Part shown: positions 1,580 through 24,330 of the stretch, piece after piece
How positions within the stretch are numbered: position 1 is the first letter of the stretch
Layout: each line of letters starts with the position of its first letter
Origin: Cyanophora paradoxa CCMP329
Taxonomy: Eukaryota > Plantae > Glaucophyta
Length of the DNA stretch: 64,000 bases
Reading direction: 5' to 3'
Assembly (NCBI GenBank): GCA_004431415.1
Contig: QPMI01000478.1
Span: forward strand, 124,001-188,000
Position numbers and translations under genes: made by a program
Notes under the pieces: generated by a model
The model's input: the letters and a program-made list of their open reading frames with translations, nothing else
Databases searched by the model: none
Told to the model about the DNA's origin: nothing

Positions 1580-1742
1580 AATTGACGGTTGCTGTGGGTC
1601 CGCCGGCGATAGGTGCACTTGCACATCGAGTCGGTTGCTGACGGGTCCGCCGGCGATAGGTGCACTTGCACATCGAGTCGGTTGCTTGACGGTTGCTGAT
1701 AAATTGACGGTTGCTGTGGGTCCGCCAGACGATGGTGCACCT
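1580..1742. repeat. Short imperfect tandem repeat (about 40-50 bp) inside the LTR element
   Basis: GGGTCCGCCGGCGATAGGTGCACTTGCACATCGAGTCGGTTGCT twice, plus a partial third copy. Confidence 0.8.
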
Positions 1743-2341: not shown

Positions 2342-3634
2342 TCACGACGACTGCCCGCGGCCGTCGTCGGAGCTCCCAAAGCCGCGACGCCGCTCAACCT
2401 CCTGCTGCCAAGCCGCACGTTCCGCCTTCAATTCTTGCAGCTCGCGCTGAAGCTTCCAGCGGCAAACGTCGGTGTTGTGCGAGCTGCTCTTGCACTCCAC
2501 ACACCAGCGTCCGTCACCACGCCGCTGAACAAAATTCCCAGCATCATCATCCCCGTCGCTGTCGCTGCTGTCATAATTGTCGCTTGAATCCTGATCCTGC
2601 TCACGATCGTCCTCCGACTCGGAACCGTCGCCGCCCGACGTCGACGTCGACGCCTTGCGCTTCGACCCGACGTTGTTGACAGCATTTACAGGTTCACACC
2701 CCGAGCTTGCTGCGGCTGCCACCTGAGCCGAGCTAGCGCTGGTCCCGGCTGCAGCCAGCAACACGTTCGCCTGTCGAAGCCTGATTGAAAGCTCGTTGAA
2801 CGACCTCACCCGCCGAAAGAATTCATTGCCCCACTCAACAATATCCTGGCGAGCTGCCTCCGGAATTTTGCAGATGAGCTTCATCATCGCCACCGACGTG
2901 ATGACATCAGCCGACATAATCTCAGCGATGAGGATCTCATCCGAATAATCAAGCTGCAGTAGACGACGAAATACAACGACGCTGTTCACAAAAGACTGAG
3001 CGTCCAACTCTGTTGGGTCGCTCAAAGTTGAGAAATGATTGCCAGCCGACTTCACAACATTGCGTAGGAGCTCAAACTTGTTGCCAGGCACCATGCCAAT
3101 TAAATGTGCACGAATCTGAGTCCACGACGCCATATCCAAGACGCCTAAATCCGACTTAGTTGACATCGCCCCCAGCACAGCAGCGTTGAAGGCCCCGCCA
3201 ACAGGATCAATTGCGCCGCGTTGCAGAGCTGACACCGCGAGCTCCGCCAAGACAGTATCAGGGTCAGAATATTTCGGAGGCCGCACAGGCCAAGTGCCCA
3301 GCCGCTCCACCGACATTATCCACGATAGAAGCCCCGCCTGCGACAAGACAGAAATATTCTCCGCGAGAGAGTTCAACTCGCGCCGCTGAGCGTGCTGCTT
3401 CATATCGACCCTCAGCGCGTCCAGCGCATCCCGCAGGACCAACGCCGTCTCGGCCCCGGCCTCACGATCAAGCCCCTGCCGCTCGCCTCCGTCGGCGCCA
3501 TCCTGCTCCTCGAGCTCGCCCTCGACGGGTTCGTGCTCAGCCCGCTCATGATCAGCCTCGAGCCCCTCCTCCGCAGCAGCTGCGGCCGCGGCCGCATCCG
3601 CAGCCCGCGCCCCAGATCGCCGTGTCCGCGCCAT
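2342..3634 (-). CDS. gag: Gag-like protein with CCHC zinc knuckle
   Basis: Intronless ORF (probable start MARTRR at 3634) containing CVECKSSSHNTDVC = C-x2-C-x4-H-x4-C, located between the LTRs. Confidence 0.85.
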   Translation of the reverse strand: MARTRRSGARAADAAAAAAAAEEGLEADHERAEHEPVEGELEEQDGADGGERQGLDREAGAETALVLRDALDALRVDMKQHAQRRELNSLAENISVLSQAGLLSWIMSVERLGTWPVRPPKYSDPDTVLAELAVSALQRGAIDPVGGAFNAAVLGAMSTKSDLGVLDMASWTQIRAHLIGMVPGNKFELLRNVVKSAGNHFSTLSDPTELDAQSFVNSVVVFRRLLQLDYSDEILIAEIMSADVITSVAMMKLICKIPEAARQDIVEWGNEFFRRVRSFNELSIRLRQANVLLAAAGTSASSAQVAAAASSGCEPVNAVNNVGSKRKASTSTSGGDGSESEDDREQDQDSSDNYDSSDSDGDDDAGNFVQRRGDGRWCVECKSSSHNTDVCRWKLQRELQELKAERAAWQQEVERRRGFGSSDDGRGQSS

Positions 3635-4500
3635 CGATATCGAGATATAAATCGAAATCGACCCGCAGCCGATCGCTAGCACGTGTTCGCACGCGTACAC
3701 CGTCCGCCCCGCGCACGCCGGCGCGCCCCCGCGATCGTCCGGCCCAGCAGCTAGCGCTGCAAGACACTCGCGATCGCCGATCCGTGCCCAAACTCGAGCT
3801 CGCAGCCCGCCACGGCCTTGCGCGCGCGCGCCCGGCCCGCGCCGCTCGCCGTCCGAGAGTCACGCCGCCCGCGCGCCCACGATCGCGACCGTCCGGCAGC
3901 CGCCGACGGCCCCCTCGAGCTCGCCTGCACGTGTGCGCCCGCGCGCGACGGCCCCGATCGATTGCAATATTAATTGCACGCCGCCCGCAACGTCGGCACG
4001 CCGGCAGCTACAGCCCGCAGCTAGCGCTGTAGCTCCGCACGCGTCCGCGGTCCCGCTCCCGCAGCTCCGAGCCCGACCAGCGCCACTCCACGCGAAGTTT
4101 TGCAGCTCCGGCTCAAGCGTACGCTCGCAAGCTGCGATGGAACAGCTGCGCTCGCGCCCCGAACGAGCCCATGTCAGGACAGCATCTCGGCGCGCACATG
4201 CGCCTTGAGAGAGTCCGAATTCGACGCTATATATCGGCCTGGCAGCGCCCGCGGCCGCAGAATTCGGAAGGGACAAGCACGCATCTTTTAGAAGGGTGCG
4301 CGGCGATGCCCAGAGATCGCTCACCCATGATCGAGCAAGGGGTCGCCGAGATGATAGCATCACGATAATGCGCAAAAGGCTCAAGATCAGTTCACGGCGC
4401 GCTGTGAGGGAACGCGCGCGCGTCCGCGCGCGAGGGAAGCTTAAGCTTAGGATCCCTCGAACTCGAGCTCGAGTTCCGAAGTTAGAGAGAACTTTTGAGC

Positions 4501-4508
4501 AGCCCCCA
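4501..4508 (-). promoter_or_regulatory. Possible primer-binding site (tRNA-Pro-like)
   Basis: TGGGGGCT lies 5 nt inside the 5' LTR on the minus strand and equals the first 8 nt of the classical tRNA-Pro PBS; the match is short. Confidence 0.35.
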
Positions 4509-4513
4509 AATCG

Positions 4514-4997
4514 TGTGCCGTCACGTCTCGCACGTCTAGGGGAGAGACGTAGACCCACACCCTGTACAACAGAGTACAGACCTTCGATGCACTCGATCGT
4601 AGGCCGTATAGGCCAGCCCGAGTCCCAGGCAGCCCGTAGCTATGAGACTGCAGACCGCAGTGCTAGTATTAATTACAGCTGCTACGCAAGCCGAATCCGA
4701 AGCTCTGCCACGTGCACACTCTAATCGAATATAATCCGAGCCTGACTAAGTCTGCCGAAGTCTGCCGACTCTGGCTATTTACTATTTAATAATTCACGTA
4801 CGCGTACTGGGCTACATCGTCCCTTCAGGGCAAAACCCTTCAGCCCTTGAGCGTCCTGCCACCTCGACGCACTCGAGCGCCAAACCCTTCAGCCCTTGAA
4901 GGCCAAACCTTTCAGCCCTTGAAGGCCGCTCGCCTGCCAGGCTGGTGGCCCAGTGGCCTCCGAGCGCCACGTCACCCTCCGAGTGCCCCGCCACCTT
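4514..4997 (-). repeat. Second LTR, left fragment
   Basis: Near-identical to 577-1060; breaks at ...CCACCTT|CACTG. Confidence 0.93.
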
Positions 4998-5035
4998 CAC
5001 TGGGGCTTAAGAAAGTCTGTTTCCCGGGGGAAACA
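4998..5035 (+). repeat. Left TIR
   Basis: CACTGGGGCTTAAGAAAGTCTGTTTCCCGGGGGAAACA. Confidence 0.92.
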
Positions 5036-5807
5036 GTCACATGTTTCCCGGCTAGCCGGGAAACATGCGCCAGTTTCCCGGGAGGTGGGAAACAGAGCTG
5101 CAACCTGGTCGTGAGGCGAGTCAGCAGCGCGGGGGCGCAGCGCTGTGCCACTGCGTACACTGACCTTAGCTACATAGCTGAGGATGGCGCCGCAAAGAGC
5201 CGATGGCCAGATTGGCCCGGTTGGCCGTTTGCTGCTGTGACCGGGTTCGTCAAGAAAACGAGCGCGCGCCACCAAAGCGCGCGGTTCAAAGTTGCTTACA
5301 GCTCATTTGGAGACGTTCTAGACTGCTAAAACGTGTGCTTTGGGGTTGGCGTGGTCCGCCGATCAAATGTTGGGCAGAGCCCGGAACGCATCGGTGGCGC
5401 GCCATTCTGCTGCAGAAGTGCTTTGATGTGATCGATAAAGCAAACTCGAGACCCGCGGCTCGCGCCGGAGAGCGATCTGTGTAACGTGCTGGTCGGGAAA
5501 CACCAGGTGGGAAACGCGGGCGAGTTGCATGGCTTGGCCAACTACGTCACCGGCGCTCGCTGGGAGTCCAGAACGACGCCTACACATCGTCTGGTGCTTA
5601 GATGCAACGCTTAGATGGTTGAATAGCGCCGCTTTTCAACCTGTCTGGCTTGACGACGTCGTGCTGTGTTTCCTATCGGGCTCCTCCCCCCCCTTTGAAG
5701 CTGTATCCCTGCTAGCCAGGAAACGTCTGCGCATGCAGCCCTGCTGAAGTTGCTGTTTCTCGTCCAGGATGCTATGTGCCTAAATGCGATGACGTTCACG
5801 TTGTGAC

Positions 5808-6659
5808 TTGAATTCGGCCATGGCTGAGGTGCGACGTACCTTGCGCACATGCATTCGTTTCTTAGGGAAACATCTCGCACCCAATTCCAAAGCACCGCTA
5901 AACAGCTCCCACGTGCAGGATGCAGATCAAAATCTGGGGAATGCAAACAAGGGCCGTTGCGGCTATCGATCTCAGCGGGCGGAGCCAAACGAGTTCGAAG
6001 GTCCGCGACACATGAACAAAACAAAGTACAACGGGGGACTCAGCAAATGTTTCTGTGCTGATTGCAAAGGCCTCGTTGTGCCGACATGGAAGCAAGACCT
6101 TCATCTTGAGCGCATCACTGGCCATGATCATACATTTACAGTGCCACCGAGCCCAATGGAGGAGATGGAGGCGGCTGAAGGGCTCTGTGCATTGAAATCG
6201 CCATCGTCCACTGCCGGCTGCCGATTGCAACAGACAATGCAATCTTCAGCTGCCGGCTGCCCAGCTATAGGACATGTACAGCCAGATCACGATCGCGAGC
6301 CATCAACTGCAACTGCTGCATGGCTGGCAGCTTGTGCACGCCTCTTTAGAGCCGCAGCAATCACAGCATTCTCATCGAGGGGTGCCGATCCCAGGACATT
6401 TATGCACTGCATCTTGTGTGGCACCACTAACCAAGGCATGTTCCCACAAGCACCGCTTGCATGGCCAGTGCATGACGAGTGTCACCGGTGCGATAATATG
6501 CAGTCACTTCATTCTAAGATCCGACTAGGGTCGAAGCCGCAGTTGGAGATTGTGCCTCCCCTGCATCAATCGCAATCCTGTGGAATAAGATCTGTTGCGA
6601 ATGCAAATATGCATGATCTGTTGCGAGCGCCGCTTGCCCACCAGCTGCAGACCCGATGA
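5808..6659 (+). other. Possible element-encoded ORF or remnant with a CxCxxC...HL motif
   Basis: KCFCADCKGLVVPTWKQDLHL resembles the Cys/His motif of the CACTA transposase-associated domain; the rest of the ORF is unrecognised. Confidence 0.3.
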
Positions 6660-6671
6660 TGCCCCATGGGA

Positions 6672-9600
6672 TAGCCGCTCGCCCCCCCGGTGCAGTACTA
6701 TAGCTAGCGATAGTGCGGCAACGCCTGATCATGATCATAAGTACTGAAAACTAGCTTCCAAGGCTCTCTGTGAGGTTGCTCGCTTTAAACGAGTACTTGC
6801 TTCGAAATGAATGATGCTACTGATCATGATCATGACCTTCGTCATGCACTCTAATCGGCCGCCTCATGATCACGACGTCGGACTGGAATCACTGAATCAA
6901 AAACGACCCACGCCGCCATCGCCAGAGCCGACCGCCCGAGATGGCGATCACTCTAGATCAGCGATGTGCGGCTCAGGCCGCAAACGAGCAGTTGCAGGAG
7001 TTGCAGCTACGATGATGCTAACCGGATTTACGAAATGGGAGAGCCGCTCGCCCCCCCGGTGCAGTACTAGCGATAGTGCGGCAATGCCTGATCATGATCA
7101 TGAGTACTCAAATCTAGCGTCCAAGGCTCTCTGCGAGGTTGCCCGCTTTAAACGAGTACTTGCTCCAAAATGAATGATGCTACTGATCATGATCATGACC
7201 TTCGTCATGCACTCTAATCGGGTGCCTCACGACGTCGGACTGGAATCACTGAATCAGAAACGGCCAGCGCCTCCAGATAAAGAGCCGACCGCCCAAGATG
7301 GCGATCACTCTAGATCAGCGATGTGCGGCTCAGGCCGCAAACGAGCAGTTGCAGGAGATGCAGCTACGATGATGCTAACCGGATTTACGAAATGGAAGAG
7401 CCGCTCGCCCTCCCGGTGCAGTACTAGCGATAGTGCGGCAACGCCTGATCATGATCATGAGTACTGAAAACTAGCTTCCAAGGCTCTCTGCGAAGTTGCC
7501 CGCTTTAAACGAGTACTTGCTTCGAAATGAATGATGCTACTGACCTTCGCCATGCATTCTGATCGGCCGCCTCCCTACTGGAATCACTGAATCAGAAACG
7601 GCCAGCGCCTCCAGATAAAGAGCCGACCGCCCAAGATGGCGATCACTCTAGATCAGCGATGTGCGGCTCAGGCCGCAAGCGAGCAGTTGCAGGAGTTGCA
7701 CTGCGGCAGCTACGATGATGCTAACCGGATTTACGAAATGGGAGAGCCGCTCGCCCCCCCGGTGCAGTACTAGCGATAGTGTGGCAACGCCTGATCATGA
7801 TCATGAGTACTCAAATCTAGCGTCCAAGGCTCGAGCTCTCTGCGAGGTTGCCCGCTTTAAACGAGTACTTGCTCCGAAATTAATGGTGCTACTGATCATG
7901 ATCATGACCTTCGTCGTGCACTCTAATCGGCCGCCTCACGACGTCGGACTGGAATCACCGAATCAATTGCAAAAACTACCCACGTGCACGCCGCCATCGC
8001 CAGAGCCGACCGCCCAAGATGGCGATCACTCTAGATCAGCGATGTGCGGCTCAGGCCGCAAACGAGCAGTTGCAGGAGTTGTAGCTACGATGATGCTAAC
8101 CGGATTTACGAAATGGGAGAGCCGCTCGCCCCCCCGGTGCAGTACTAGCGATAGTGTGGCAACGCCTGATCATGATCATGAGTACTCAAATCTAGCGTCC
8201 AAGGCTCGAGCTCTCTGCGAGGTTGCCCGCTTTAAACGAGTACTTGCTCCGAAATTAATGGTGCTACTGATCATGATCATGACCTTCGTCGTGCACTCTA
8301 ATCGGCCGCCTCACGACGTCGGACTGGAATCACCGAATCAATTGCAAAAACTACCCACGTGCACGCCGCCATCGCCAGAGCCGACCGCCCAAGATGGCGA
8401 TCACTCTAGATCAGCGATGTGCGGCTCAGGCCGCAAACGAGCAGTTGCAGGAGTTGTAGCTACGATGATGCTAACCGGATTTACGAAATGGGAGAGCCGC
8501 TCGCCCCCCCGGTGCAGTACTAGCGATAGTGCGGCAATGCCTGATCATCATCATGAGTACTCAAATCTAGCGTCCAAGGCTCTCTGCGAGGTTGCCCGCT
8601 TTAAACGAGTACTTGCTCCAAAATGAATGATGCTACTGATCATGATCATGACCTTCGTCATGCACTCTAATTGGGTGCCTCACGACGTCGGACTGGAATC
8701 ACTGAATCAAAAACGACCCACTCCGCCATCGCCAGAGCCGACCGCCCGAGATGGCGATCACTCTAGATCAGCGATGTGCGGCTCAGGCCGCAAACGAGCA
8801 GTTGCAGGAGTTGCAGCTCAGCGGCTACGATGATGCTAACTGGATTTACGAAATGGGAGAGCCGCTCGCCCCCCCGGTGCAGTACTAGCGATAGTGTGGC
8901 AACGCCTGATCATGATCATGAGTACTGAAAACTAGCTTCCAAGGCTCTCTGCGAAGTTGCCCGCTTTAAACGAGTACTTGCTTCGAAATGAATGATGCTA
9001 CTGACCTTCGCCATGCATTCTGATCGGCCGCCTCCCTACTGGAATCACTGAATCAGAAACGGCCAGCGCCTCCAGATAAAGAGCCGACCGCCCAAGATGG
9101 CGATCACTCTAGATCAGCGATGTGCGGCTCAGGCCGCAAACGAGCAGTTGCAGGAGTTGCAGCTACGATGATGCTAACCGGATTTACGAAATGGAAGAGC
9201 CGCTCGCGCTCCCGGTGCAGTACTAGCGATAGTGCGGCAACGCCTGATCATGATCATGAGTACTGAAAACTAGCTTCCAAGGCTCTCTGCGAAGTTGCCC
9301 GCTTTAAACGAGTACTTGCTTCGAAATGAATGATGCTACTGACCTTCGCCATGCATTCTGATCGGCCGCCTCCCTACTGGAATCACTGAATCAGAAACGG
9401 CCAGCGCCTCCAGATAAAGAGCCGACCGCCCAAGATGGCGATCACTCTAGATCAGCGATGTGCGGCTCAGGCCGCAAGCGAGCAGTTGCAGGAGTTGCAC
9501 TGCGGCAGCTACGATGATGCTAACCGGATTTACGAAATGGGAGAGCCGCTCGCCCCCCCGGTGCAGTACTAGCGATAGTGTGGCAATGCCTGATCATGAT

Positions 9601-10190
9601 CATGAGTACTCAAATCTAGCGTCCAAGGCTCGAGCTCTCTGCGAGGTTGCCCGCTTTAAACGAGTACTTGCTCCGAAATTAATGGTGCTACTGATCATGA
9701 TCATGACCTTCGTCGTGCACTCTAATCGGCCGCCTCACGACGTCGGACTGGAATCACCGAATCAATTGCAAAAACTACCCACGTGCACGCCGCCATCGCC
9801 AGAGCCGACCGCCCAAGATGGCGATCACTCTAGATCAGCGATGTGCGGCTCAGGCCGCAAACGAGCAGTTGCAGGAGTTGTAGCTACGATGATGCTAACC
9901 GGATTTACGAAATGGGAGAGCCGCTCGCCCCCCCGGTGCAGTACTAGCGATAGTGCGGCAATGCCTGATCATCATCATGAGTACTCAAATCTAGCGTCCA
10001 AGGCTCTCTGCGAGGTTGCCCGCTTTAAACGAGTACTTGCTCCAAAATGAATGATGCTACTGATCATGATCATGACCTTCGTCATGCAATCTAATCGGCC
10101 GCCTCACGACGTCGGACTGGAATCACTGAATCAAAAACGACCCACTCCGCCATCGCCAGAGCCGACCGCCCGAGATGGCGATCACTCTAG
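6672..10190 (-). repeat. Tandem array 1: about 10 units of about 340-380 bp
   Basis: GATCACTCTAG recurs 10 times between 6946 and 10190; several unit subtypes are present. Confidence 0.95.
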
Positions 10191-10606
10191 CGATGGCCGT
10201 TGGGCTGGAATCACTGAATCACGACACTAGCTACTAGCTAGTAATCTAGATCTATAGCTAGTGTCGACTCCCGATCCGACTTCATGATCATGATCCGACC
10301 CTGCACGAGGAGGGCGTAAAGGGCACAAAGGGAAGCTCCAACTATAGCTAGGCGTCCATCACGAATAGCGGAGCCCGTGAGGCGGCGTAATGCAATCGCC
10401 GTGATGTGCACTGCGCGACAGACACAACGGCTCGCCCAGGTGATTCCGGGGCGTGATGCTACGCGGGTAGTGGCCCATTCCAATACGTATACCTATAGAT
10501 TGCAAGCTCACCGAGCCCCGATCATGATCTGTGGCTACGCCATATGCATCATGCCAGCTCACAGCAAGACTGCTAAAGCTTGCTATAGCTGTACATGCGG
10601 TCTCAT

Positions 10607-13600
10607 CTATCTCCTCTGAAGGCCCCGTCTGCCCAGGGACTCTGCAAAATCACGATCAGATACTTCAGTTGCAGATCAATGTTGGATTGCATCTGTTGCA
10701 CACACCAATGTCGAAATCAATTGGGAATATATACCGATGAAATGTAGACTTGTCTGCAGCGGGCTGCACTGACACTCCGAGTGTTGGGACACTTGGTGGC
10801 ATAGCAAAGAGAAACCCTGCATTGCAAATGACTCAAATCTGATTGCAATTCAAAATATACAGTTGCAGTTTAACGTTGGACACGTTACCCCTTACCCGCA
10901 TGAGAAATTCTGGAAGGGAGTTCGTCTTGAATGATTTCTTGAATCTTGCCTCGAATCGTTTCTGCTCCCACCTGAAGGTCTTTAAAGAATCTGAAGTTGG
11001 CTTTTCGCATCCTGCAAACTGCGATAGATGTCAGAAAATTAAGTACGAGTGGACGCTTACAATTATAATCGCTGACGTTCATCGAGAAGCCATGAAGTTT
11101 GCAAAAGCGCGAAACGATATGGCTGAGTGGTGACAGCATCTGCGGGATTTTCAATTGCAAACCTGTACATGTATTGAGCAGCGACGTTGGGCAGCCTGTA
11201 GTACCTATATGATGCTGTGCAAAATTCCTGGCAGAGATGTTGAAAGTCCGTTCCCAGGGATCTACTTCACCAGGCATTCGTTCCACCTAATTATAAGCAT
11301 GTGCACCGATCGCAAGCTTGAGTATTCATGATCGTGCAAGCGAGATGTATATCGCAGTATCTATATAGAGTTTGCAGAGTTGCGCACGAGAATGAACGAC
11401 GGAATCAACATCTTGCCCGTAACCACGCCATGGACGTAGAATGGACCGAGGCCGCGTTTGGTTGCAGCACTCACGAATTGCTCAAAAGCGAAGAAAGACA
11501 ATCCAGTTCGACAAGCACCTACATATGCGCTAAATTAGGCAAGCCAGCTCTTTCCGTGAAAATGTTTAATGCAGATTTTAGAGCGAGCATGAACCTGTCA
11601 GTGATTCATCGAAGACAAGTGCAATGCTGAACTTCTGGCAGATTGCCGACAGCTGCACAAGAAAATCCAGCGACATGTAGCGAATTCCCTTCTCGCCATC
11701 CATTTGGATGGCCTCACAGATAATGATCTGGTTGCAATAAGTTTCGAAACAGCTTCATGCGCATGCCAACGTACTTTTATAGGCAGCTTTGAAAAAGGGT
11801 GCGACATTGTGAGCTCTTCCTTAGTGACACTTGCACTTCTTTTGATGCGTTGTTGAACGATCTATAGATAGATAGCCGGCATCAGGTGCGTGTGATCATG
11901 ATCATCTGTGCACTTGCATATGAAATTATAAGCTTAAGCTACATACCTTGCGAATGTCTTGAATGGCCTTGCGAACAGCCCCAGCATTGGCTTTAGGTGG
12001 CTGCTCACTGGGATGACGGTCGTCGTACACGCAAGGAATGACGAGATGGTCTTCCCTTTAAACAGTCCCAGTTAGCCGGTTTCACTTTGCAAATTGGCTT
12101 TAGGGGATTTAATCAAAGCCTCCACAGCTTCAGACGAACCGTCCATTGAATGCACCAGCAGGCCTGGGCTCTCGCCTGCCAACATTCGTTCCAAGCGCGC
12201 CCCTTGATGTTCCCCAGCAATCTTGTGCCCAAACGTACGCTCCCATATCGAATTCGAACTCGGGGTTTGTGCGCTTGCACATCCTTGAAATCTGATTGTA
12301 CGTTTCAATGTTTCAAGAGTAAGGTTGCTTAAAAAGAAAACAAGCGCACCAGGCAAGCAATCTCATTGATTACCGATTCTTGGTCAGAGGTGCTTCCAGT
12401 GTTTGCAAGTGTCCCAAATCCGTAGCCCTCTGCCAGCGTGCTGAGGTCATTGTCAATCTTTCTCCTTAGAGCTGTGATATCCTCTGCAAAAAAGTTATTA
12501 AAAAAGAAGCAGAGTCAACGTTAAGATTGCAGCAAATTAAATTTCGATATTGAAAATACCGTTTGAAGAATAACAAGAATGCGTGCTCGAGCTGAAGTCA
12601 ACGTTGTCGTGCACTAAAGATGGGGCAGCCATTGGATCTGATAGTACATGCCGAATGAATCTGAGGAAACATTGAATAAGATATCGCAGAAATTGATTAA
12701 TTGTATTAATATTACAGGAAAGAATAAATCAATCGCAATCACTTGGCGTTCATCTCATCAGTGTGTTCCGGTTGCGAGAGCACTGATGAGATGGATGAGC
12801 CCCACGCGCCGAAAAAATCGTGCTTGCGTGCATTGTAGATGGATCTCCACTGCCGATCGTGATTCAACCGGCCTTGAAAAATCTCCACAGCAACTTCTGG
12901 TGCAAGGCGGGACCAAGGGGAGCTGGAGCTCCTGTCCCGCATCTTGGATTCAGAGCTGGCCATGGGACTTGAGCTCCGTTCAGATACTCGAAGGAGTGCT
13001 AGAAGCTCGGTGATGTTGCTGCCTGAAAACGAACCACATGCACTGATATCGATATGCGAGCCGTAAATGTAATTATAAGATGCAAATATGCTGCGTCATA
13101 CACATAGCGTGGACTCACCGAAAAACTTTCAATGCTTCTTGAGGACTATAAAGTTCACTGAAGCCGAGAAGCACAATATAAGCCAGGGCGATGGGGTCCG
13201 TCAAATAGTTTGCCAGAATTGTCTTCATCACCCTGTAAATGTCAACGAGAACAAATTAAGAAAGGAGAAAATAGGGACGGAATTGAAAATCAATATTAAC
13301 ACTGACTGCATGGTAGCTTTCAAGATGCCTGTTGTTGCAGACAAAGATTCCAGATCCGATCGCAATTTTCGAAGCAGCTCTAATTCCGGATCGATTCGTT
13401 GCTGTGATCGTCCTGCCATGCATGTGAGCCTTAATTATATAATTAGATCAATTCAAACGGCTGTGCACCTTGATCATCAGCATTATCCAACATGTACATG
13501 TGCTCATGATCAGCACCTCCAGCTGCACACGATCGCGATCCAGCCGGCACATTCACCTCCAAGTTGCCTGTATGTATATATGTGCCATTTGCATTGCTTT

Positions 13601-13843
13601 GTAAGCAGGCTGCAACGCATCCCTGATTTGATGGCACACGCACGCTTTTTGGAAGCAGATACATGTGCCGCGGCCGGCTGGGATGCGTCGACGTCGACCT
13701 CTCGATTCTCAAGGGCGGTAGTGGCTACAGCCCCAAGCAGCTCTAGGCCTCCGACATGTGATTGCTCTAGATCTGTGTTCAGTGCTCATGATCAGTGGCT
13801 GATGTAGGGCGAGCACGTAATTATAACGACCGCGCTGCACCAT
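10607..13843 (-). CDS. Divergent class-III (PLP-dependent) aminotransferase-like protein, multi-exon, with N-terminal extension
   Basis: Manually spliced exons give, in the expected order: TLANTGSTSDQES (~NSGSEA); WGTSRGALG (~YHGRTLGAL); IIICEAIQ...FLVQLSAICQKFSIALVFDESLTGACRTGLSFFAFEQF (11727-11595, 11518-11388); VVTGKML (PLP lysine); HRYIFPID (~RFxPPL). Intron phases were consistent where checked. The terminal exons are less certain. Confidence 0.8.
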
Positions 13844-15103
13844 TGCTCGGCGAATTTGAATTCGAAATCGAAAAGGAACTTTGCACATGACGTCGACTGG
13901 AGGATTCGAATTCGGCCGCAGCCGCCTCCGCAGCCACCTTCCTCTTGGCGGCTTCAACTGCACGCACAGACAGATTACTCACAATGGAATGGACTCTTTG
14001 GGCTTTATATAGCGCAGCGGCTGCCTGGCGGCCGGCTAGCTGCAAAGGCCGCTGTGCATGGCCAGATCACTAGAGAGAAGCCTCCGCAAGCACAGCCGCC
14101 CTCGTCTTGGCGGCTGCACGCACAGTGACGATCTTTAAGATATATAGCTTAGCATGCTTAGCTTTTCATGATCAAGAGGCCGCCCGGTCGCTGGCTTAAA
14201 AAGCTTGCCAGGTCGCTGGCTACAGGGAGAGGCGGTTGCGGACCCCGAAGACTTCCGCTCGACAAGCTCATGCGCAAACGACACGCATACGAACCTGCTT
14301 CGCTTTCAAAGCCGTCTGGTCTCGCGGGAGTCTTGCCTCTTGCTGCCAACGATGCTGCGACACCTTTTTCGCTCTGCTTCGCCCGAAGCGCTGACTTCAC
14401 GCCACCACCTCGCTTTTTGGGGTCCTTCTTCAGATTGAACGTGACGTGCAGCTGGAGCGCCGCGCGCTCGCCAGGCATTGTGCTCGCCGTGCACTCGCTG
14501 CAGCTGGGGGGTACTGTCTTCGCAATCTCTCAAAAGCACTTCTCCTCGTAAATTGAACGAGCGATTCTCCTCGAGCTCTAGATATATAGATCGATATCTC
14601 TGCGCCTTTAGATCTCCGGATCCTCTAGCGAGCTTCACTCGAGCGCCAGCTGCAGAGCTCGAGACGTCGACGGACTTCCCCCCCCCCACCTTCGGAGACT
14701 GTACCCCCTATATTTTGCGAACGGCCTTCCTCGTTTGAAAAGCGAGCAGCTCTGCGCACCGAGCAGCTCAGCGACTGCTGCCGAATGCAGATCATGGAAG
14801 ATCGGAACGCAAGTCATTTGCGTGCGAGACCCTGAGGTGAAGTCAGGTTTGTGCGGTCATTTGCGGTCCAGGTGCGCTCCTTCTCATCACAGCTGTGCGC
14901 TTGCGATAGGCGGTTTCCTTAGTTGCGCAAACACGAAAGCAATTGGTTCGCAGCCGCTCATCCCCCCCACCCTCGGCCGTTGGCTGCAGCTGGCCATGGC
15001 CGTGGAATGGATCGATGGCGTCGCGCGCGCCGGCAAGCGCGACCTTCATTGAAGGTGCGCATTCCCTTGGCTGCAACTTATCATCATTTCCCGCCTGCTC
15101 ATA

Positions 15104-18100
15104 GCCGCGCCTCGCAGAGTGATCGCGATCGCTTTCTCGGGGGGCTGCAGCTGGCTCTGGCGGGCTGTTTCTGAACCGAGTGCTGGGGCGTCGCTCCGGC
15201 CGATCCGAGTGCATGGCGAAGGTCCGTTCCATCATTCATTTCGATATTTGTGCTCGTCTCAATCGTGCGACCTCGCAGGCATCTTGGGAGCTTCGAATTC
15301 GCTTTCGGCACTCTCGGCTTGGCCGCGCCGCACTGGTGGGCGGGCGGCGCTCTCGCTTCGTAATAAAGGTGAGTATCGCTGCTGCTGCAACTTCTAATCG
15401 TTTCGGGCCTGACCCGCGCCTCGCAGAGTGATCGCTTTCTCGGGGGATGGCTCTGGCGGTCTGTTTCTGACCCGAGTGCTGGGGCGTCGCTCCGGCCGAT
15501 CCGAGCGCATGGCGAAGGTCAGTTCCATCATTCATTTCGATATTTGCACTCGTCTCAATCGTGCGACCTCGCAGGCATCTTGGGAGCTTCGCTTTCGGCA
15601 CTCTCGGCGTGGCCGCGCCGCACCTGGTGGGCGGGCGGCGCTCTCGCTTCGTAATAAAGGTGAGTATCACTGCTGCTGCAACTTCTAATCGTTTCGGGCC
15701 TGACCCGCGCCTCGCAGAGTGATCGCTTTCTCGGGGGCATGGCTCTGGCGGGCTGTTTCTGACCCGAGTGCTGGGGCGTCGCTCCGGCCGCTCGGGGGGC
15801 TGCAGCTGGCTCTGGCGGGCTGTTTCTGAACCGAGTGCTGGGGCGTCGCTCCGGCCGATCCGAGTGCATGGCGAAGGTCCGTTCCATCATTCATTTCGAT
15901 ATTTGTGCTCGTCTCAATCGTGCGACCTCGCAGGCATCTTGGGAGCTTCGAATTCGCTTTCGGCACTCTCGGCGTGGCCGCGCCGCACCTGGTGGGCGGG
16001 CGGCGCTCTCGCTTCGTAATAAAGGTGAGTATCACTGCTGCTGCAACTTCTAATCGTTTCGGGCCTGACCCGCGCCTCGCAGAGTGATCGCTTTCTCGGG
16101 GGCATGGCTCTGGCGGGCTGTTTCTGACCCGAGTGCTGGGGCGTCGCTCCGGCCGCTCGGGGGCTGCAGCTGGCTCTGGCGGGCTGTTTCTGAACCGAGT
16201 GCTGGGGCGTCGCTCCGGCCGATCCGAGTGCATGGCGAAGGTCCGTTCCATCATTCATTTCGATATTTGTGCTCGTCTCAATCGTGCGACCTCGCAGGCA
16301 TCTTGGGAGCTTCGAATTCGCTTTCGGCACTCTCGGCTTGGCCGCGCCGCACCTGGTGGGCGGGCGGCGCTCTCGCTTCGTAATAAAGGTGAGTATCGCT
16401 GCTGCTGCAACTTCTAATCGTTTCGGGCCTGACCCGCGCCTCGCAGAGTGATCGCTTTCTCGGGGGATGGCTCTGGCGGGCTGTTTCTGACCCGAGTGCT
16501 GGGGCGTCGCTCCGGCCGATCCGAGCGCATGGCGAAGGTCAGTTCCATCATTCATTTCGATATTTGCACTCGTCTCAATCGTGCGACCTCGCAGGCATCT
16601 TGGGAGCTTCGCTTTCGGCACTCTCGGCGTGGCCGCGCCGCACCTGGTGGGCGGGCGGCGCTCTCGCTTCGTAATAAAGGTGAGTATCACTGCTGCTGCA
16701 ACTTCTAATCGTTTCGGGCCTGACCCGCGCCTCGCAGAGTGATCGCTTTCTCGGGGCATGGCTCTGGCGGGCTGTTTCTGACCCGAGTGCTGGGGCGTCG
16801 CTCCGGCCGATCCGAGCGCATGGCGAAGGTCAGTTCCATCATTCATTTCGATATTTGCACTCGTCTCAATCGTGCGACCTCGCAGGCATCTTGGAGCTTC
16901 GCTTTCGGCACTCTCGGCGTGGCCGCGCCGCACCTGGTGGGCGGGCGGCGCTCTCGCTTCGTAATAAAGGTGAGTATCGCTGCTGCTGCAACTTCTAATC
17001 GTTTCGGGCCTGACCCGCGCCTCGCAGAGTGATCGCTTTCTCGGGGCATGGCTCTGGCGGGCTGTTTCTGACCCGAGTGCTGGGGCGTCGCTCCGGCCGC
17101 TCGGGGGCTGCAGCTGGCTCTGGCGGGCTGTTTCTGAACCGAGTGCTGGGGCGTCGCTCCGGCCGATCCGAGTGCATGGCGAAGGTCCGTTCCATCATTC
17201 ATTTCGATATTTGTGCTCGTCTCAATCGTGCGACCTCGCAGGCATCTTGGGAGCTTCGAATTCGCTTTCGGCACTCTCGGCTTGGCCGCGCCGCACCTGG
17301 TGGGCGGGCGGCGCTCTCGCTTCGTAATAAAGGTGAGTATCGCTGCTGCTGCAACTTCTAATCGTTTCGGGCCTGACCCGCGCCTCGCAGAGTGATCGCT
17401 TTCTCGGGGGATGGCTCTGGCGGTCTGTTTCTGACCCGAGTGCTGGGGCGTCGCTCCGGCCGATCCGAGCGCATGGCGAAGGTCAGTTCCATCATTCATT
17501 TCGATATTTGCACTCGTCTCAATCGTGCGACCTCGCAGGCATCTTGGGAGCTTCGCTTTCGGCACTCTCGGCGTGGCCGCGCCGCACCTGGTGGGCGGGC
17601 GGCGCTCTCGCTTCGTAATAAAGGTGAGTATCACTGCTGCTGCAACTTCTAATCGTTTCGGGCCTGACCCGCGCCTCGCAGAGTGATCGCTTTCTCGGGG
17701 GCATGGCTCTGGCGGGCTGTTTCTGACCCGAGTGCTGGGGCGTCGCTCCGGCCGCTCGGGGGGCTGCAGCTGGCTCTGGCGGGCTGTTTCTGAACCGAGT
17801 GCTGGGCGTCGCTCCGGCCGATCCGAGTGCATGGCGAAGGTCCGTTCCATCATTCATTTCGATATTTGTGCTCGTCTCAATCGTGCGACCTCGCAGGCAT
17901 CTTGGGAGCTTCGAATTCGCTTTCGGCACTCTCGGCGTGGCCGCGCCGCACCTGGTGGGCGGGCGGCGCTCTCGCTTCGTAATAAAGGTGAGTATCACTG
18001 CTGCTGCAACTTCTAATCGTTTCGGGCCTGACCCGCGCCTCGCAGAGTGATCGCTTTCTCGGGGGCATGGCTCTGGCGGGCTGTTTCTGACCCGAGTGCT

Positions 18101-21100
18101 GGGGCGTCGCTCCGGCCGCTCGGGGGGCTGCAGCTGGCTCTGGCGGGCTGTTTCTGAACCGAGTGCTGGGGCGTCGCTCCGGCCGATCCGAGTGCATGGC
18201 GAAGGTCCGTTCCATCATTCATTTCGATATTTGTGCTCGTCTCAATCGTGCGACCTCGCAGGCATCTTGGGAGCTTCGAATTCGCTTTCGGCACTCTCGG
18301 CTTGGCCGCGCCGCACCTGGTGGGCGGGCGGCGCTCTCGCTTCGTAATAAAGGTGAGTATCGCTGCTGCTGCAACTTCTAATCGTTTCGGGCCTGACCCG
18401 CGCCTCGCAGAGTGATCGCTTTCTCGGGGATGGCTCTGGCGGGCTGTTTCTGACCCGAGTGCTGGGGCGTCGCTCCGGCCGATCCGAGCGCATGGCGAAG
18501 GTCAGTTCCATCATTCATTTCGATATTTGCACTCGTCTCAATCGTGCGACCTCGCAGGCATCTTGGGAGCTTCGCTTTCGGCACTCTCGGCGTGGCCGCG
18601 CCGCACCTGGTGGGCGGGCGGCGCTCTCGCTTCGTAATAAAGGTGAGTATCACTGCTGCTGCAACTTCTAATCGTTTCGGGCCTGACCCGCGCCTCGCAG
18701 AGTGATCGCTTTCTCGGGGGCATGGCTCTGGCGGGCTGTTTCTGACCCGAGTGCTGGGGCGTCGCTCCGGCCGATCCGAGCGCATGGCGAAGGTCCGTTC
18801 CATCATTCATTTCGATATTTGCACTCGTCTCAATCGTGCGACCTCGCAGGCATCTTGGGAGCTTCGCTTTCGGCACTCTCGGCGTGGCCGCGCCGCACCT
18901 GGTGGGCGGGCGGCGCTCTCGCTTCGTAATAAAGGTGAGTATCGCTGCTGCTGCAACTTCTAATCGTTTCGGGCCTGACCCGCGCCTCGCAGAGTGATCG
19001 CTTTCTCGGGGGCATGGCTCTGGCGGGCTGTTTCTGACCCGAGTGCTGGGGCGTCGCTCCGGCCGCTCGGGGGGCTGCAGCTGGCTCTGGCGGGCTGTTT
19101 CTGAACCGAGTGCTGGGGCGTCGCTCCGGCCGATCCGAGTGCATGGCGAAGGTCCGTTCCATCATTCATTTCGATATTTGTGCTCGTCTCAATCGTGCGA
19201 CCTCGCAGGCATCTTGGGAGCTTCGAATTCGCTTTCGGCACTCTCGGCTTGGCCGCGCCGCACCTGGTGGGCGGGCGGCGCTCTCGCTTCGTAATAAAGG
19301 TGAGTATCGCTGCTGCTGCAACTTCTAATCGTTTCGGGCCTGACCCGCGCCTCGCAGAGTGATCGCTTTCTCGGGGGATGGCTCTGGCGGGCTGTTTCTG
19401 ACCCGAGTGCTGGGGCGTCGCTCCGGCCGATCCGAGCGCATGGCGAAGGTCAGTTCCATCATTCATTTCGATATTTGCACTCGTCTCAATCGTGCGACCT
19501 CGCAGGCATCTTGGGAGCTTCGCTTTCGGCACTCTCGGCGTGGCCGCGCCGCACCTGGTGGGCGGGCGGCGCTCTCGCTTCGTAATAAAGGTGAGTATCA
19601 CTGCTGCTGCAACTTCTAATCGTTTCGGGCCTGACCCGCGCCTCGCAGAGTGATCGCTTTCTCGGGGGCATGGCTCTGGCGGGCTGTTTCTGACCCGAGT
19701 GCTGGGGCGTCGCTCCGGCCGCTCGGGGGGCTGCAGCTGGCTCTGGCGGGCTGTTTCTGAACCGAGTGCTGGGGCGTCGCTCCGGCCGATCCGAGTGCAT
19801 GGCGAAGGTCCGTTCCATCATTCATTTCGATATTTGTGCTCGTCTCAATCGTACGCGTGCGACCTCGCAGGCATCTTGGGAGCTTCGAATTCGCTTTCGG
19901 CACTCTCGGCTTGGCCGCGCCGCACCTGGTGGGCGGGCGGCGCTCTCGCTTCGTAATAAAGGTGAGTATCGCTGCTGCTGCAACTTCTAATCGTTTCGGA
20001 CCTGACCCGCGCCTCGCAGAGTGATCGCTTTCTCGGGGGATGGCTCTGGCGGGCTGTTTCTGACCCGAGTGCTGGGGCGTCGCTCCGGCCGATCCGAGCG
20101 CATGGCGAAGGTCAGTTCCATCATTCATTTCGATATTTGTGCTCGTCTCAATCGTACGCGTGCGACCTCGCAGGCATCTTGGGAGCTTCGAATTCGCTTT
20201 CGGCACTCTCGGCTTGGCCGCGCCGCACCTGGTGGGCGGGCGGCGCTCTCGCTTCGTAATAAAGGTGAGTATCGCTGCTGCTGCAACTTCTAATCGTTTC
20301 GGACCTGACCCGCGCCTCGCAGAGTGATCGCTTTCTCGGGGGATGGCTCTGGCGGGCTGTTTCTGACCCGAGTGCTGGGGCGTCGCTCCGGCCGATCCGA
20401 GCGCATGGCGAAGGTCAGTTCCATCATTCATTTCGATATTTGCACTCGTCTCAATCGTGCGACCTCGCAGGCATCTTGGGAGCTTCGCTTTCGGCACTCT
20501 CGGCGTGGCCGCGCCGCACCTGGTGGGCGGGCGGCGCTCTCGCTTCGTAATAAAGGTGAGTATCACTGCTGCTGCAACTTCTAATCGTTTCGGGCCTGAC
20601 CCGCGCCTCGCAGAGTGATCGCTTTCTCGGGGCATGGCTCTGGCGGGCTGTTTCTGACCCGAGTGCTGGGGCGTCGCTCCGGCCGATCCGAGCGCATGGC
20701 GAAGGTCCGTTCCATCATTCATTTCGATATTTGCACTCGTCTCAATCGTGCGACCTCGCAGGCATCTTGGGAGCTTCGCTTTCGGCACTCTCGGCGTGGC
20801 CGCGCCGCACCTGGTGGGCGGGCGGCGCTCTCGCTTCGTAATAAAGGTGAGTATCGCTGCTGCTGCAACTTCTAATCGTTTCGGGCCTGACCCGCGCCTC
20901 GCAGAGTGATCGCTTTCTCGGGGGGATGGCTCTGGCGGGCTGTTTCTGACCCGAGTGCTGGGGCGTCGCTCCGGCCGATCCGAGCGCATGGCGAAGGTCA
21001 GTTGCATCATTCATGTCGATATTTGCACTCGTCTCAATCGTGCGACCTCGCAGGCATCTTGGGAGCTTCGCTTTCGGCACTCTCGGTGTGGCCGCGCCGC

Positions 21101-21349
21101 ACCTGGTGGGCGGGCGGCGCTCTCGCTTCGTAATAAAGGTGAGTATCGCTGCTGCTGCAACTTCTAATCGTTTCGGGCCTGACCCGCGCCTCGCAGAGTG
21201 ATCGCTTTCTCGGGGGGATGGCTCTGGCGGGCTGTTTCTGACCCGAGTGCTGGGGCGTCGCTCCGGCCGATCCGAGCGCATGGCGAAGGTCAGTTCCATC
21301 ATTCATTTCGATATTTGCACTCGTCTCAATCGTGCGACCTCTCAGGCAT
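15104..21349 (+). repeat. Tandem array 2: about 20 units of about 291 bp (short) or about 365 bp (long)
   Basis: GTAATAAAGGTGAGT recurs 19 times; long units carry an internal duplication of about 67 bp and a GAATTC insertion. Confidence 0.95.
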
Positions 21350-23105
21350 CAGGTGCCGCAGCTGGAGGGCAGGCGCGCGGCGCTCGTACTTCGTAAATTA
21401 AAGAAGGCGAGTATCTCCGTAGCACTATCAATATAGCTAACAAAGATGACTATTGGTTAAAGCGCTATCTGTAGTGTACATGTATTAATTTTAGCGATAG
21501 GCGAGCACTACCAGCGATTTTAATGCGTTAGTACTAGCTATATAGTGTATTAATCATGGTTCACCGATCGATATCGCGAGTCACGGTTTCTTTAATTTTT
21601 GCAAAAGCGGACGTCGCATTGATACACCACGGCACATGTATCAATGTTCTACGTGACGTGCCCTTCCGATCGCGACCGGTCATCGATATCTATCTAGCCG
21701 GCCATGGGTCACCGAGTCACGGTTTCAGACGTCAACGTGTCACGTTTTCAGACGTCAATGTTGAATTCTTAAAGATAATGCCAGGATCTAGACTCGTTGA
21801 GTTCTATAGCCCCGCAGCCCCTCATGATCAACGACTGCTAATAGGCTTCATCTTTGCATGTCCCCTGGTCTGCGCAGATCAAGCCTAGATCGTGGCTGTA
21901 TCCGTAGCACTCTAGATCTTTATAAACCGTTGAACTGACTTGCAAATACGCTCGCAGTGCTTTTCTCCGGGCGGCGCCTCAACTGAACGGTCCTAGGCCT
22001 CGGACAAGGTGATTCATTCATGATTTGCAGCTGCACTAGCTATACCTATAGTACTAGATCTAGATTTGCAGCTGTACTATCATAGTACGGATCTGGCGTT
22101 ATATAATTAGATGAAATAGGCAATCTCTATTTTGAAATTCGAATTCAACCGCCGATCGAGAATCGAGATCCGTTGGTAACATTTGCATTCTATCGTTGCT
22201 ATATGTATCAATATTAATGCTATCATTCTAGATACAGATTAGAGAGCCGGCGCAAGCGCTAGCTATATATATGCAGATCTACCTCCTGCTGCAGTCCACT
22301 GATGATACGGCTTCCTTTTCCACAGGTCAGCTCTACATCCGCTCTGTATGTGTTCAGGTCCGAGTGCGAGCTCGCTCTAGATCTGCAATATACGTTTATA
22401 TATATACATGATTATTAAAACTGATTGCGGTATGGCTTTGTACGAATGTATACACGCAGTTTTCTTCTACTGGCCTGGCCTCCGCCAGCTGCAGCCGCCC
22501 GGTCAATATCATGATCATGAGGTGCTTTGAACTTGCAATTGCTATCATAGCAAGCTGCACTAGTAATATAGCTAATTATTGCTCGCATGCGCAGCGTTGG
22601 CATGCGTATGGCACGCGGTCATGAGTCATGATCATGATCCGCTGCAGCTGCAGCTGCAGCTGCGCGCAGCAAGCTTAAGTACTGAGTAGGAGATCTAGAG
22701 CAGCGCTATATATATAGCTAGCTATATACATTGCTCGCCTTGCAGCGTTAGCACAGCACGCGTACGATGCAGCCCAGCAAGCAGAAGATCATCGCGATCG
22801 GATCCCGGCCTAGCTAGCTCGGATCTTAGCTAGCTAGCTCGCTAGGATCTTAGCTAGCTATAGCTCGCTAGGATCTTAGCTAGCTCGTTAGCTTGAGTTG
22901 TACATGTGTATAAAGAGTACAGCGTTAACGTTGCGCATGTTTGGCGATGTAAAAACCAGCTAGCTAGATGGGTCGGGTAATGGGCAAACGAAAAAAAAGT
23001 TACCCGGTGGGAAACTCAGCGATGTTTCCCACCTGACGTTTCCCACCTGATGGTCCCCATGGGGGTCCTCCGCCCCGGTGTGTTACCTATAGGGTAACAT
23101 GCATG

Positions 23106-23143
23106 TGTTTCCCCCGGGAAACATACTTTCTTAGGCACCAGTG
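23106..23143 (-). repeat. Right TIR
   Basis: Reverse complement is CACTGGTGCCTAAGAAAGTATGTTTCCCGGGGGAAACA. Confidence 0.92.
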
Positions 23144-23275
23144 CTTGGCCATTCGAGTGCTAGGCCCGGGGCCTCTCCTGGACCGGGTACGCCGGGCCGG
23201 CGGCCGGCCCCCCCTCAGGGCCCGCAGCGGGTACGCCCCCGCGTCGATCGCGAACTCGCGATCGCGCCCGCGACA
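23144..23275 (-). repeat. Second LTR, right fragment (including the duplicated CTT)
   Basis: Matches 1058-1189 and is followed by GTAT. Confidence 0.93.
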
Positions 23276-24330
23276 GTATATATTGTTTTTATATTTTTTC
23301 TAATGCAGTAAAAGAGGAAAACCCCCGTGCGCATGCAGTACCTGGATCTGTGCTGATGCCATGATGATGAGCGTAATTCCAATCCGAGTGGCTGACGCTG
23401 CCGCGGACGCTGCTGCCCCGGCTCCCGCGAGGGCGGCGCCAGCCGGCCTCCCCCCCTCCTCCCCTCCTTCCCCCCCCCCGCTATCCCCCCCCCCGCCCCG
23501 GCCCCGCCTCCTCCCCCGCTTGAGCGGTTCCCTCCCCCCCCTCCCCCTCACTCGTACCCTCCCCCTTCCCCCACCCTCCACCCCCCCCCCCCCCAGGAGA
23601 ACAACGCGAATTCGAACGAGGGCTCGAATTCGTGGTAGATCTAGACAAGGACGACTCGAGCGTCACTCGGTGTGCAGTGTCGGCCAAGCCTCTTGATGCA
23701 AGCTTTTTATAGATCTAGAGCTGCGCCCTCCGTCGTCCCTTGCAATTAGAACTACTAAGTATCCGTCGCAGCTTACCTTATATATAGCTTACCTCTAGTT
23801 GGGCTTCAAGCTGCGGCCCGGCAGCAGATAGCTAGCGCTGGCATTCCGGCCTGGCGGACGCCTTTCTTTAATTATAACCAGTCATTAAGGCTTCTTGAAG
23901 CAAGCTTTCTCTCTAAGGCCTCAAGCTAGCTTAAGCTTAAGCCGGGCGCCGGCGGCCCGGCGGCCCGGGCCCTTACAGTTAGGCAGGTCGAATGCGCTGT
24001 TCATGATCATGATCAAGGAGATTTTCGCGCGCGGCGCGCGCGCGGGCCTCGCCCTCCACAAGGACGTCGACGAGCTCCAGCTTCAGGTGCTACCCCTTTA
24101 TGACAGTGCCGGGCCTTGACAGCGCTCAGCTCCCTATAAATCAAATGAAGTCCTCACGATTGACTTTGCACGCGAACTCACGCCCTCCGGATTTGATCCG
24201 CCGCAGAGCTCGAGGGGCCTCCCAAAAGACCTATTCAAGGTCCGCATGATATGTACGCGCTCATGATCAGGTGAGCCGGGGCTCAGCTGAGGTGAGCGGG
24301 GCCGGGCTCGGCCGCGAGTCTGATCGGAGC

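Follow-up and report, generated by a model that had tools for sequence, protein, structure and literature searches.

The element found at positions 4998–23143 of the window (the whole stretch of Cyanophora paradoxa DNA analysed here, 64,000 nucleotides) probably belongs, as a non-autonomous copy, to a CACTA/EnSpm-type family (CMC supergroup) with several members, and it carries what is likely a long-kept accessory gene resembling that of a PLP enzyme. It is 18,146 bp long, and its parts are listed in Table 1. The terminal inverted repeats (TIRs) are 38 bp in length and each opens with CACTG; 35 of the 38 positions are identical between the two inverted copies. The target site duplication (TSD) is the 3-bp sequence CTT, copies of which are at 4995–4997 and 23144–23146.

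The element lies in the right LTR of a small, pol-less LTR retroelement, which was split by the insertion into two parts. The left LTR of the same retroelement is unbroken across the insertion point and has one CTT at 1058–1060: this is the empty site. The two LTRs have two mismatches over 613 sites, and the stretch 1058–1189 is identical to 23144–23275. In addition, the DNA-run contigs that match through 4997 read on into unbroken LTR sequence. The transposon landed after the young LTR element had inserted. The TIRs, the 3-bp TSD, the recent movement and the empty site preserved by the sister LTR, all of which had been claimed in a sequence-only reading of this DNA, are thus confirmed. It should be mentioned that the ORF at 2342–3700 in the host LTR element had no match in Pfam, so that its assignment as gag comes from the motif only.

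Table 1. Features of the transposon and of the LTR retroelement in which it is nested (positions in the window)
Feature	Position	Strand	Description
Intact host LTR	577–1189		613 bp; holds the empty target site
Gag-like ORF of host LTR element	2342–3700	-	452 aa; CCHC-like Cys/His cluster
Split LTR, first part	4514–4997		Ends in the left CTT copy
Left TIR	4998–5035	+	Begins CACTG; contig ends fall exactly at 4998; right-end contigs part after 5035
Left subterminal region	5019–5515		8 GTTTCCC motifs, both orientations
Unnamed ORF	5808–6659	+	283 aa; left unique region; common to other family members
Left satellite array	6666–10190	+	375-bp unit, 9.8 copies
Class-III-aminotransferase-like gene, conserved part	10665–13014	-	At least 12 exons (predicted)
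Right satellite array	~15100–21513	-	291/364-bp units, ~20 copies
Right subterminal region	23009–23122		5 GTTTCCC motifs
Right TIR	23106–23143	-	Inverted copy of the left TIR
Split LTR, second part	23144–23275		Begins with the right CTT copy

In contigs from 2012 DNA runs, the same terminus at exactly 4998 is joined to at least four other flanks. This means that the element belongs to a multi-copy mobile family; in other words, the copy number of the family is above one. Variant contigs, 3–8% diverged, span 5026–6346 and have branch points at 5549 and 6593, so that the members of the family seem to have common ends and different interiors.

The GTTTCCC motif occurs 17 times in the window, compared with 7.5 expected, and none of 100 shuffles reached this number. 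Thirteen of the 17 copies are within ~520 bp of the element ends, in both orientations. The satellite arrays occupy ~55% of the element length. The left and right arrays are inverted and distantly related (67–68% over ~147 nt and 86% over a further 28 nt); a single inverted repeat was probably the ancestor of both, each array having been homogenised on its own since then. The long ORFs within both arrays gave only repeat-inflated noise in Pfam, with no single stretch passing, and scans of 4000–24000 with Rfam and for tRNA found no structured RNA and no tRNA.

The arrangement of TIR, array, gene, inverted array and TIR had been regarded as the best candidate for an undescribed system. This is not supported, since CACTA elements are described as having TIRs with direct and inverted repeats next to them, satellite arrays in the interior and genes that were captured (PMC8978399). 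The GTTTCCC clusters and the inverted arrays match the usual CACTA/EnSpm design; therefore, the layout is not new. The novelty is in the cargo and not in the architecture. Plant non-autonomous CACTA/EnSpm elements (Chenopodium 'Jozin' and related ones, PMC8978399) have the same CACT(A/G) termini, 3-bp TSD and subterminal repeats. They are also alike in their internal tandem arrays, their foreign coding sequence and their mobilisation in trans, which would apply to the present element as well. The differences from these plant elements (PMC8978399) are the glaucophyte host, the large share of the arrays and their disposition as two inverted arms, and a cargo that appears to be a complete, intron-bearing and long-diverged gene rather than a recognisable fragment of a host gene.

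The gene is on the minus strand, a detail absent from the sequence-only reading. The gene model was examined exon by exon using predicted splice junctions, and the database scores below refer to single exons or to the core. Eleven conserved blocks, from 13014 to 10710, follow the same order as in the annotated Cyanophora protein P0001/P0004 and in a second paralogue on the public contig L001 (run ERR10034898). A frame-keeping GT-AG intron of 47–121 nt is possible at every junction, and seven junctions have a single solution. The gene is thus predicted to be full-length and phase-consistent, and it probably extends upstream to ~13.8–14.0 kb, where there is a TATA-like box. A spliced gene of this kind, with class-III aminotransferase motifs in order, had been proposed from the letters of the window; the GT-AG introns at every junction and the PF00202-like core bear this out. 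No sampled word of 10200–15100 was present in any of the RNA-type runs, and there was no assembled transcript. This copy may therefore be silent or dead. The GC content of the gene is 46% with a CpG observed/expected ratio of 0.89, compared with ~70% GC in the host flank. This composition indicates that the gene is not a decayed recent capture. Decay by CpG deamination was considered as a cause of the low GC content and the divergence, and was ruled out by the CpG ratio and the intact frames.

Profile comparisons consistently place the predicted core with the class-III aminotransferases. The exon at 11581–11754 matched Pfam PF00202 with an E-value of 2.4e-6 and 27.0 bits, below the 30.5-bit cut-off, and the P0001 paralogue scored 18.5 bits against the same family. 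When the core profile was compared with the PDB, all 28 chains at E<1 were class-III aminotransferases (the best at 8.1e-4); in another PDB search, 29 of 29 matches at E<1 were class-III enzymes. The 30 nearest Atlas clusters were all PF00202. The part of the core that can be aligned reaches from the strand preceding the PLP-binding Asp to the R-T-G...F-A-F segment inclusive, and its only matches are the class-III (fold-type I) PLP aminotransferases, among them ArgD, GabT and BioA.

The order of the motifs is that of the class-III enzymes: the N-S/T-G-S-like motif, the H/W-G-x-T/S-x-G-A-like motif, the Asp of FDE and a candidate Lys in G-K. In the profile alignments, the Asp of FDE, which would contact the pyridine nitrogen of PLP, aligns with the Asp of D-E-V-Q in ArgD and GabT, and all three paralogues (the copy in the window, P0001 and L001) have it. 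The candidate Schiff-base Lys is in an H-G-x-x-x-G-K motif kept in all three paralogues in the core alignment. This Lys is ~10 residues beyond the usual 26–30 after the Asp, and the statistical alignments end before it. The Gln of the DEVQ motif is substituted in all three paralogues, so that catalysis may be altered or lost. Besides the score below the Pfam cut-off, the replaced Gln and the extra residues before the candidate Lys, the element protein differs from the class-III enzymes in a long N-terminal extension. The residues of the three paralogues were compared in a small core alignment; a MAFFT alignment of all exon pieces misplaced many fragments and was set aside. The AlphaFold2 model of P0001, which was calculated without an alignment, had a pLDDT of 32 and was unusable: the family is too small to give a useful alignment for fold prediction. 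An N-S-G-S-like motif at 12075–12362 in another frame was rejected, because the paralogue alignments put the motif at 12442–12341. Identity with the plant 'aminotransferase-like' plant-mobile-domain family (PMC5418596) was also considered and rejected: there was no such Pfam match among the scanned exons.

No transposase was detected in this copy. Pfam searches covered the unique regions and the arrays with all their large ORFs and stop-free segments and gave no transposase-like or DDE-type match, and the TnpD-type DDE transposase (Pfam Transposase_21 and partners) was absent from every ORF and segment tested. This means that the copy is non-autonomous at best and is presumably mobilised by a transposase from elsewhere; the earlier claim of an enzyme-like gene instead of a transposase agrees with this. 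An unrecognised transposase might nevertheless be hidden, for example in the ORF at 5808–6659, or the enzyme-like protein might contain one in its N-terminal extension; the element would then be autonomous. This ORF is common to other copies, and it seems to accept in-frame indels only: the contigs from other copies show indels of 9 and 3 nt, and four of the six substitutions listed are at third codon positions, a pattern that is suggestive only. The ORF also encodes a short Cys cluster with H-L after it, which may resemble the 'transposase-associated' motif at the N terminus of plant CACTA transposases. However, the ORF had no match in Pfam, in the Atlas or in the homologue search, the last of which was limited by the length filter and the word index, and a DDE-type match was found nowhere in the element. 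Furthermore, the unique DNA beyond the gene and the arrays is only ~4.5 kb in three pieces, too small for a typical intron-bearing CACTA transposase gene. Autonomy of the element is therefore very improbable. A different machinery is also unlikely, if less so: the element would then be either a foldback-type transposon or part of a different CAC-ended lineage (Chapaev-, Transib- or RAG-like). This copy offers no transposase for classification, and the long inverted satellite arms recall the Drosophila foldback (FB) elements, in which long arms of tandem repeats surround a unique centre that possibly holds a gene. The arms of FB elements, however, extend to the termini and the duplications are 9 bp, whereas in the present element the duplication is 3 bp, and the arrays are flanked on the outside by unique subterminal regions of 1.6 kb and by discrete 38-bp CACTG TIRs. 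Short TIRs with termini of the form 5'-CACT(A/G)...(T/C)AGTG-3' (here CACTG), a 3-bp TSD and dense direct and inverted subterminal repeats are the marks of the CACTA/EnSpm group (CMC supergroup), and their combination is the classic CACTA signature (PMC8978399). Moreover, the distinction would stay inside one supergroup, and the mechanism, DDE cut-and-paste, would be unchanged.

The origin of the gene is the other point on which the assignment as a CACTA/EnSpm element with a long-kept accessory gene has to be weighed. When 1.84 billion representatives were searched exhaustively with phmmer, no more than two relatives came up, tig00020531_g10036, which is a Cyanophora gene model, and one Logan contig (L001); at least one of the two is thus from Cyanophora. 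The homologue search with P0001 or the conserved region of P0004 found nothing besides P0001, within the scope set by the length filter and the word index. Passive capture is one possible origin: the element might have taken up a host gene from an aminotransferase-like family that is specific to Cyanophora. This gene would be useless to the element, and the copy would be too young for decay. Capture of host genes is frequent in CACTA elements (PMC8978399), and the closest relative of the gene is annotated in the host as a gene model with three isoforms. The lack of transcript contigs for this copy also fits passive capture, as does the L001 contig, in which no TIRs or arrays are visible. However, the copy is predicted to be full-length and is not a fragment; it has introns of its own and a TATA-like region upstream. 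The nearest known proteins are only ~45–50% identical in the best exons (~48–50% for the nearest one), there is no nucleotide similarity to L001, and the low GC content relative to the host flank is found without strong depletion of CpG. The cargo of Pack-type elements is fragmentary or chimeric and has high nucleotide identity to the donor, whereas the cargo here appears full-length and in frame, with at most ~50% identity to the nearest proteins found and no nucleotide match to L001. The distance of the nearest proteins and the contrast in GC content, together with the same exon structure in the paralogues, fit long maintenance under selection rather than a fresh capture, as the sequence-only reading had suggested. 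Passive capture is a minority possibility, and we prefer an accessory gene travelling with the elements.

In the preferred model, the ends of the element would supply what the transposase needs in cis, namely the 38-bp CACTG TIRs and the clustered GTTTCCC motifs. A transposase made elsewhere would have cut and pasted the element in trans, and its landing in the LTR of the young retroelement duplicated CTT. The gene would belong to a small family restricted to Cyanophora, in which it has long remained intact, and would be an accessory gene rather than a fresh host fragment. Its product, a very divergent protein, most likely binds PLP and has an amine-bearing substrate, to the benefit of the element; we infer both this enzymatic activity and the selection for the element's benefit.

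Transposons that keep non-transposase enzyme genes are rare, and they reveal how mobile elements manipulate their hosts. The cases known to us are TET/JBP dioxygenases and DNA methyltransferases, and to our knowledge glaucophyte transposons are almost undescribed. In the literature searched, there was no report of a PLP-dependent aminotransferase-like enzyme as a transposon-kept gene. The closest parallel is given by fungal DNA transposons (EnSpm, Plavaka, KDZ and others), which keep TET/JBP dioxygenase genes (PMC12730594): a non-transposase enzyme gene is inside cut-and-paste elements, EnSpm-type ones included, and these elements are presumed to profit by escaping silencing that depends on methylation. 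The Cyanophora gene differs from them (PMC12730594) in its entirely different enzyme class, with a predicted PLP fold instead of the 2OG-Fe dioxygenase.

In C. paradoxa, CpG methylation is heavy on repeats, and genes that carry methylation are silent (PMC12344493). The benefit of the protein might be, for example, to counter the CpG-methylation-linked silencing over repeats. A SET/AWS gene adjoins the L001 paralogue, and this SET-domain neighbour hints at a link to chromatin. It is conceivable, although doubtful at present, that the protein is a PLP enzyme kept by the transposon which has chromatin, DNA or a regulatory metabolite as its target, and so aids movement or escape from such silencing. 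If this is true, transposons would have an accessory enzyme of a new class, with a parallel in the TET/JBP genes of fungal transposons. Even if the gene is mere captured cargo, the locus is a clean and datable case of nested recent transposition. If the gene is a regular, selected part of the family, it would point to a new and testable way in which elements interact with their hosts, in a lineage that branches close to the base of the plants.

The element is a real, recently inserted, non-autonomous transposon of the CACTA type and belongs to a multi-copy family. It begins with CACTG and finishes with the reverse complement of this motif, and its terminal inverted repeats (TIRs) are 38 bp long with 35 identities. 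CTT stands on either side of the element; a single CTT is found in the intact LTR of the host retroelement. This LTR is uninterrupted across the position where the sister LTR is broken, and represents the empty site. The two LTRs show two mismatches (window 647/4584 and 717/4654). Since the TIRs, the CTT duplication, the empty site and the split LTR were all verified, the insertion account of the sequence-only reading, including the two LTR differences, is right in every checked detail.

Coordinates of the element, its host and other features of the window
Feature	Position	Description
Host LTR element	577-4997 + 23144-23275	
Intact LTR of host element	577-1189	613 bp
Sister LTR, in two pieces	4514-4997 + 23144-23275	
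CACTG element	4998-23143	18,146 bp
283-aa ORF	5808-6659	left unique region of the element
Left tandem array	6666-10190	375-bp unit, 9.8 copies
Right tandem array	~15100-21513	291/364-bp units, ~20 copies
C-rich/CT-rich low-complexity tracts	23440-23600, 31093-31172, 34437-34944	
Series of related ORFs	39600-56600	minus strand; repeat periods ~1.8 kb and ~2.8 kb
AT-rich segment	61298-63573	33-40% GC

Without the insert, the host LTR element measures only about 4.7 kb. Its LTRs are of the TG...CA form and it is flanked by a GTAT duplication. It has a single gag-like ORF, with a CCHC-like cluster, read from the minus strand. Because it lacks pol, the host element, too, is non-autonomous. In the 2012 reads its LTRs are present in multiple copies.

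Contigs from four DNA runs of 2012, all from one sample, were aligned to window 3800-6700. Several of them match the element inward from exactly 4998 and have at least four different outer sequences; the same terminus is therefore present at other loci. Contigs matching the LTR up to 4997 run on as unbroken LTR sequence. Right-end contigs agree over the first 38 bp, part company after 5035 and so confirm the TIR length. Variants diverged by 3-8% span 5026-6346 and branch at 5549 and 6593, and thus the family members are alike at their ends and unlike inside. The left junction is crossed by one contig (4575-5025, one mismatch) with only 28 letters within the element, slightly short of the 31-letter threshold for junction support, and this contig was counted as weak support. 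It should be mentioned that the copy-to-copy differences in the LTR and the transposon end (3800-6700) are mostly transitions (C>T, G>A, T>C, A>G). Such a bias would be consistent with mutation of repeats linked to methylation.

In the window, 17 copies of the heptamer GTTTCCC were counted where 7.5 would be expected, and no shuffle attains this count; 13 of the copies, in both orientations, are no more than about 520 bp from the element's two ends. Both tandem arrays sit inward of unique subterminal stretches. They are mutually inverted and show only distant kinship (67-68% over ~147 nt and a 28-nt block at 86%); derivation from one ancient inverted repeat, with separate homogenisation later, fits these sequences. 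TIRs, subterminal direct and inverted repeats, satellite arrays and captured coding sequence have all been described in CACTA elements (PMC8978399). Because each feature is described there, the layout, from which an undescribed system had been proposed, does not constitute a new one; the architecture is one that is usual in the superfamily.

Apart from gene and arrays, the element has only about 4.5 kb of unique sequence. Pfam comparison of the unique regions (large ORFs and stop-free segments) and of the ORFs in the arrays gave no transposase-like match. Other family copies also have the 283-aa ORF; relative to it they show indels of 9 and 3 nt, both in frame, and of the six substitutions listed between copies, four are at third codon positions. 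No relatives of this ORF were detected. It has a short Cys cluster followed by H-L, which may resemble the N-terminal motif of plant CACTA transposases.

The central gene is encoded on the minus strand. One of its stop-free pieces, 58 residues long (11581-11754), matches the class-III aminotransferase family PF00202 with an E value of 2.4e-6 and 27.0 bits, against a cut-off of 30.5, and no other stop-free piece of the gene gives a Pfam score singly. An exhaustive phmmer search with this piece over 1.84 billion representatives gave just two true relatives: P0001/P0004 (EukProt EP00741, Cyanophora paradoxa tig00020531_g10036), which is the protein closest to the central gene, and an ORF of 150 aa on the 8.8-kb Logan contig L001. 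In translated comparison, eleven conserved blocks run from 13014 to 10710 in an order identical in both relatives; nucleotide comparison with L001 gave no similarity. Each neighbouring pair of blocks can be joined in frame across a canonical GT-AG intron, 47-121 nt in length, and seven junctions admit only one intron solution. The frame closes at a stop near 10,665. The DNA upstream of the blocks, as far as about 14.0 kb, contains a TATA-like box and additional candidate exons. The model was assessed exon by exon, not as a joined protein. Most intron positions are common to the paralogues; one intron of the window copy is missing from L001. With frame-keeping introns throughout and block identities of about 30-53% to the relatives, the full-length, phase-consistent and strongly diverged enzyme-like gene of the sequence-only reading is borne out. 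On L001 (run ERR10034898), some 4 kb separate the paralogue from an opposite-strand gene with a SET/AWS domain, which is histone-methyltransferase-like (254-1296 and 5437-8400), and no transposon ends are visible on this contig.

The profile of A4, the core alignment of the paralogues, matched 28 PDB chains at E<1, all of them class-III aminotransferases (best 8.1e-4), and P0004 alone gave 29 matches, class III throughout. In protein-language-model features, 30 of the 30 nearest clusters were PF00202. The alignment to E. coli ArgD and GabT extends from the strand before the active site, across F-D-E, to the R-T-G...F-A-F segment. In it, the PLP ring-contacting Asp is retained, and the Gln two residues past it is substituted in all three paralogues. 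These also share a Lys in a conserved G-K motif, and the residues downstream resemble those after the Schiff-base Lys of ArgD. This Lys is about ten residues further along than expected and the statistical alignments end before reaching it, so that it is rated as a candidate only. A single-sequence AlphaFold model had a pLDDT of 32 and was unusable. Judged from sequence, the protein is best described as class-III-aminotransferase-like and is not filed as a member of the family.

The intact frame of this complete gene, its GC content of 46% (about 70% in adjacent host DNA) with no marked CpG loss (observed/expected 0.89), the absence of a close relative in the public protein sets searched and the shared introns point to an old divergence under purifying selection, rather than to the recent capture of an ordinary host gene that then decayed. 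The RNA-type runs of C. paradoxa argue against present activity of this copy, since no sampled word of 10200-15100 is present in any of them; in this species, silence is the general rule for repeats and methylated genes (PMC12344493).

The window as a whole is GC-rich eukaryotic DNA. The low-complexity tracts belong to the host DNA on the right side of the LTR element, where GC is very high (70-82%). The series of related ORFs encodes similar modules of about 180 aa with many N-x-S/T sites and conserved Cys, which matched no Pfam family; it has the look of a large surface-protein gene with tandem domains, or of an array of such genes. The AT-rich segment carries two minus-strand features, an ORF resembling integrase (rve, E=2.2e-4) and a fragment of a protein-primed DNA polymerase B (E=1.6e-3), and looks like part of a Polinton/Maverick-type element. 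The CpG observed/expected ratio in 58-64 kb is 0.68.

What is unusual in the element is the PLP-enzyme-like gene, which is intact and highly divergent. The literature searched yielded no account of an aminotransferase-like gene in a transposon-kept role. The closest parallel to this gene is provided by fungal DNA transposons, which retain TET/JBP genes (PMC12730594).
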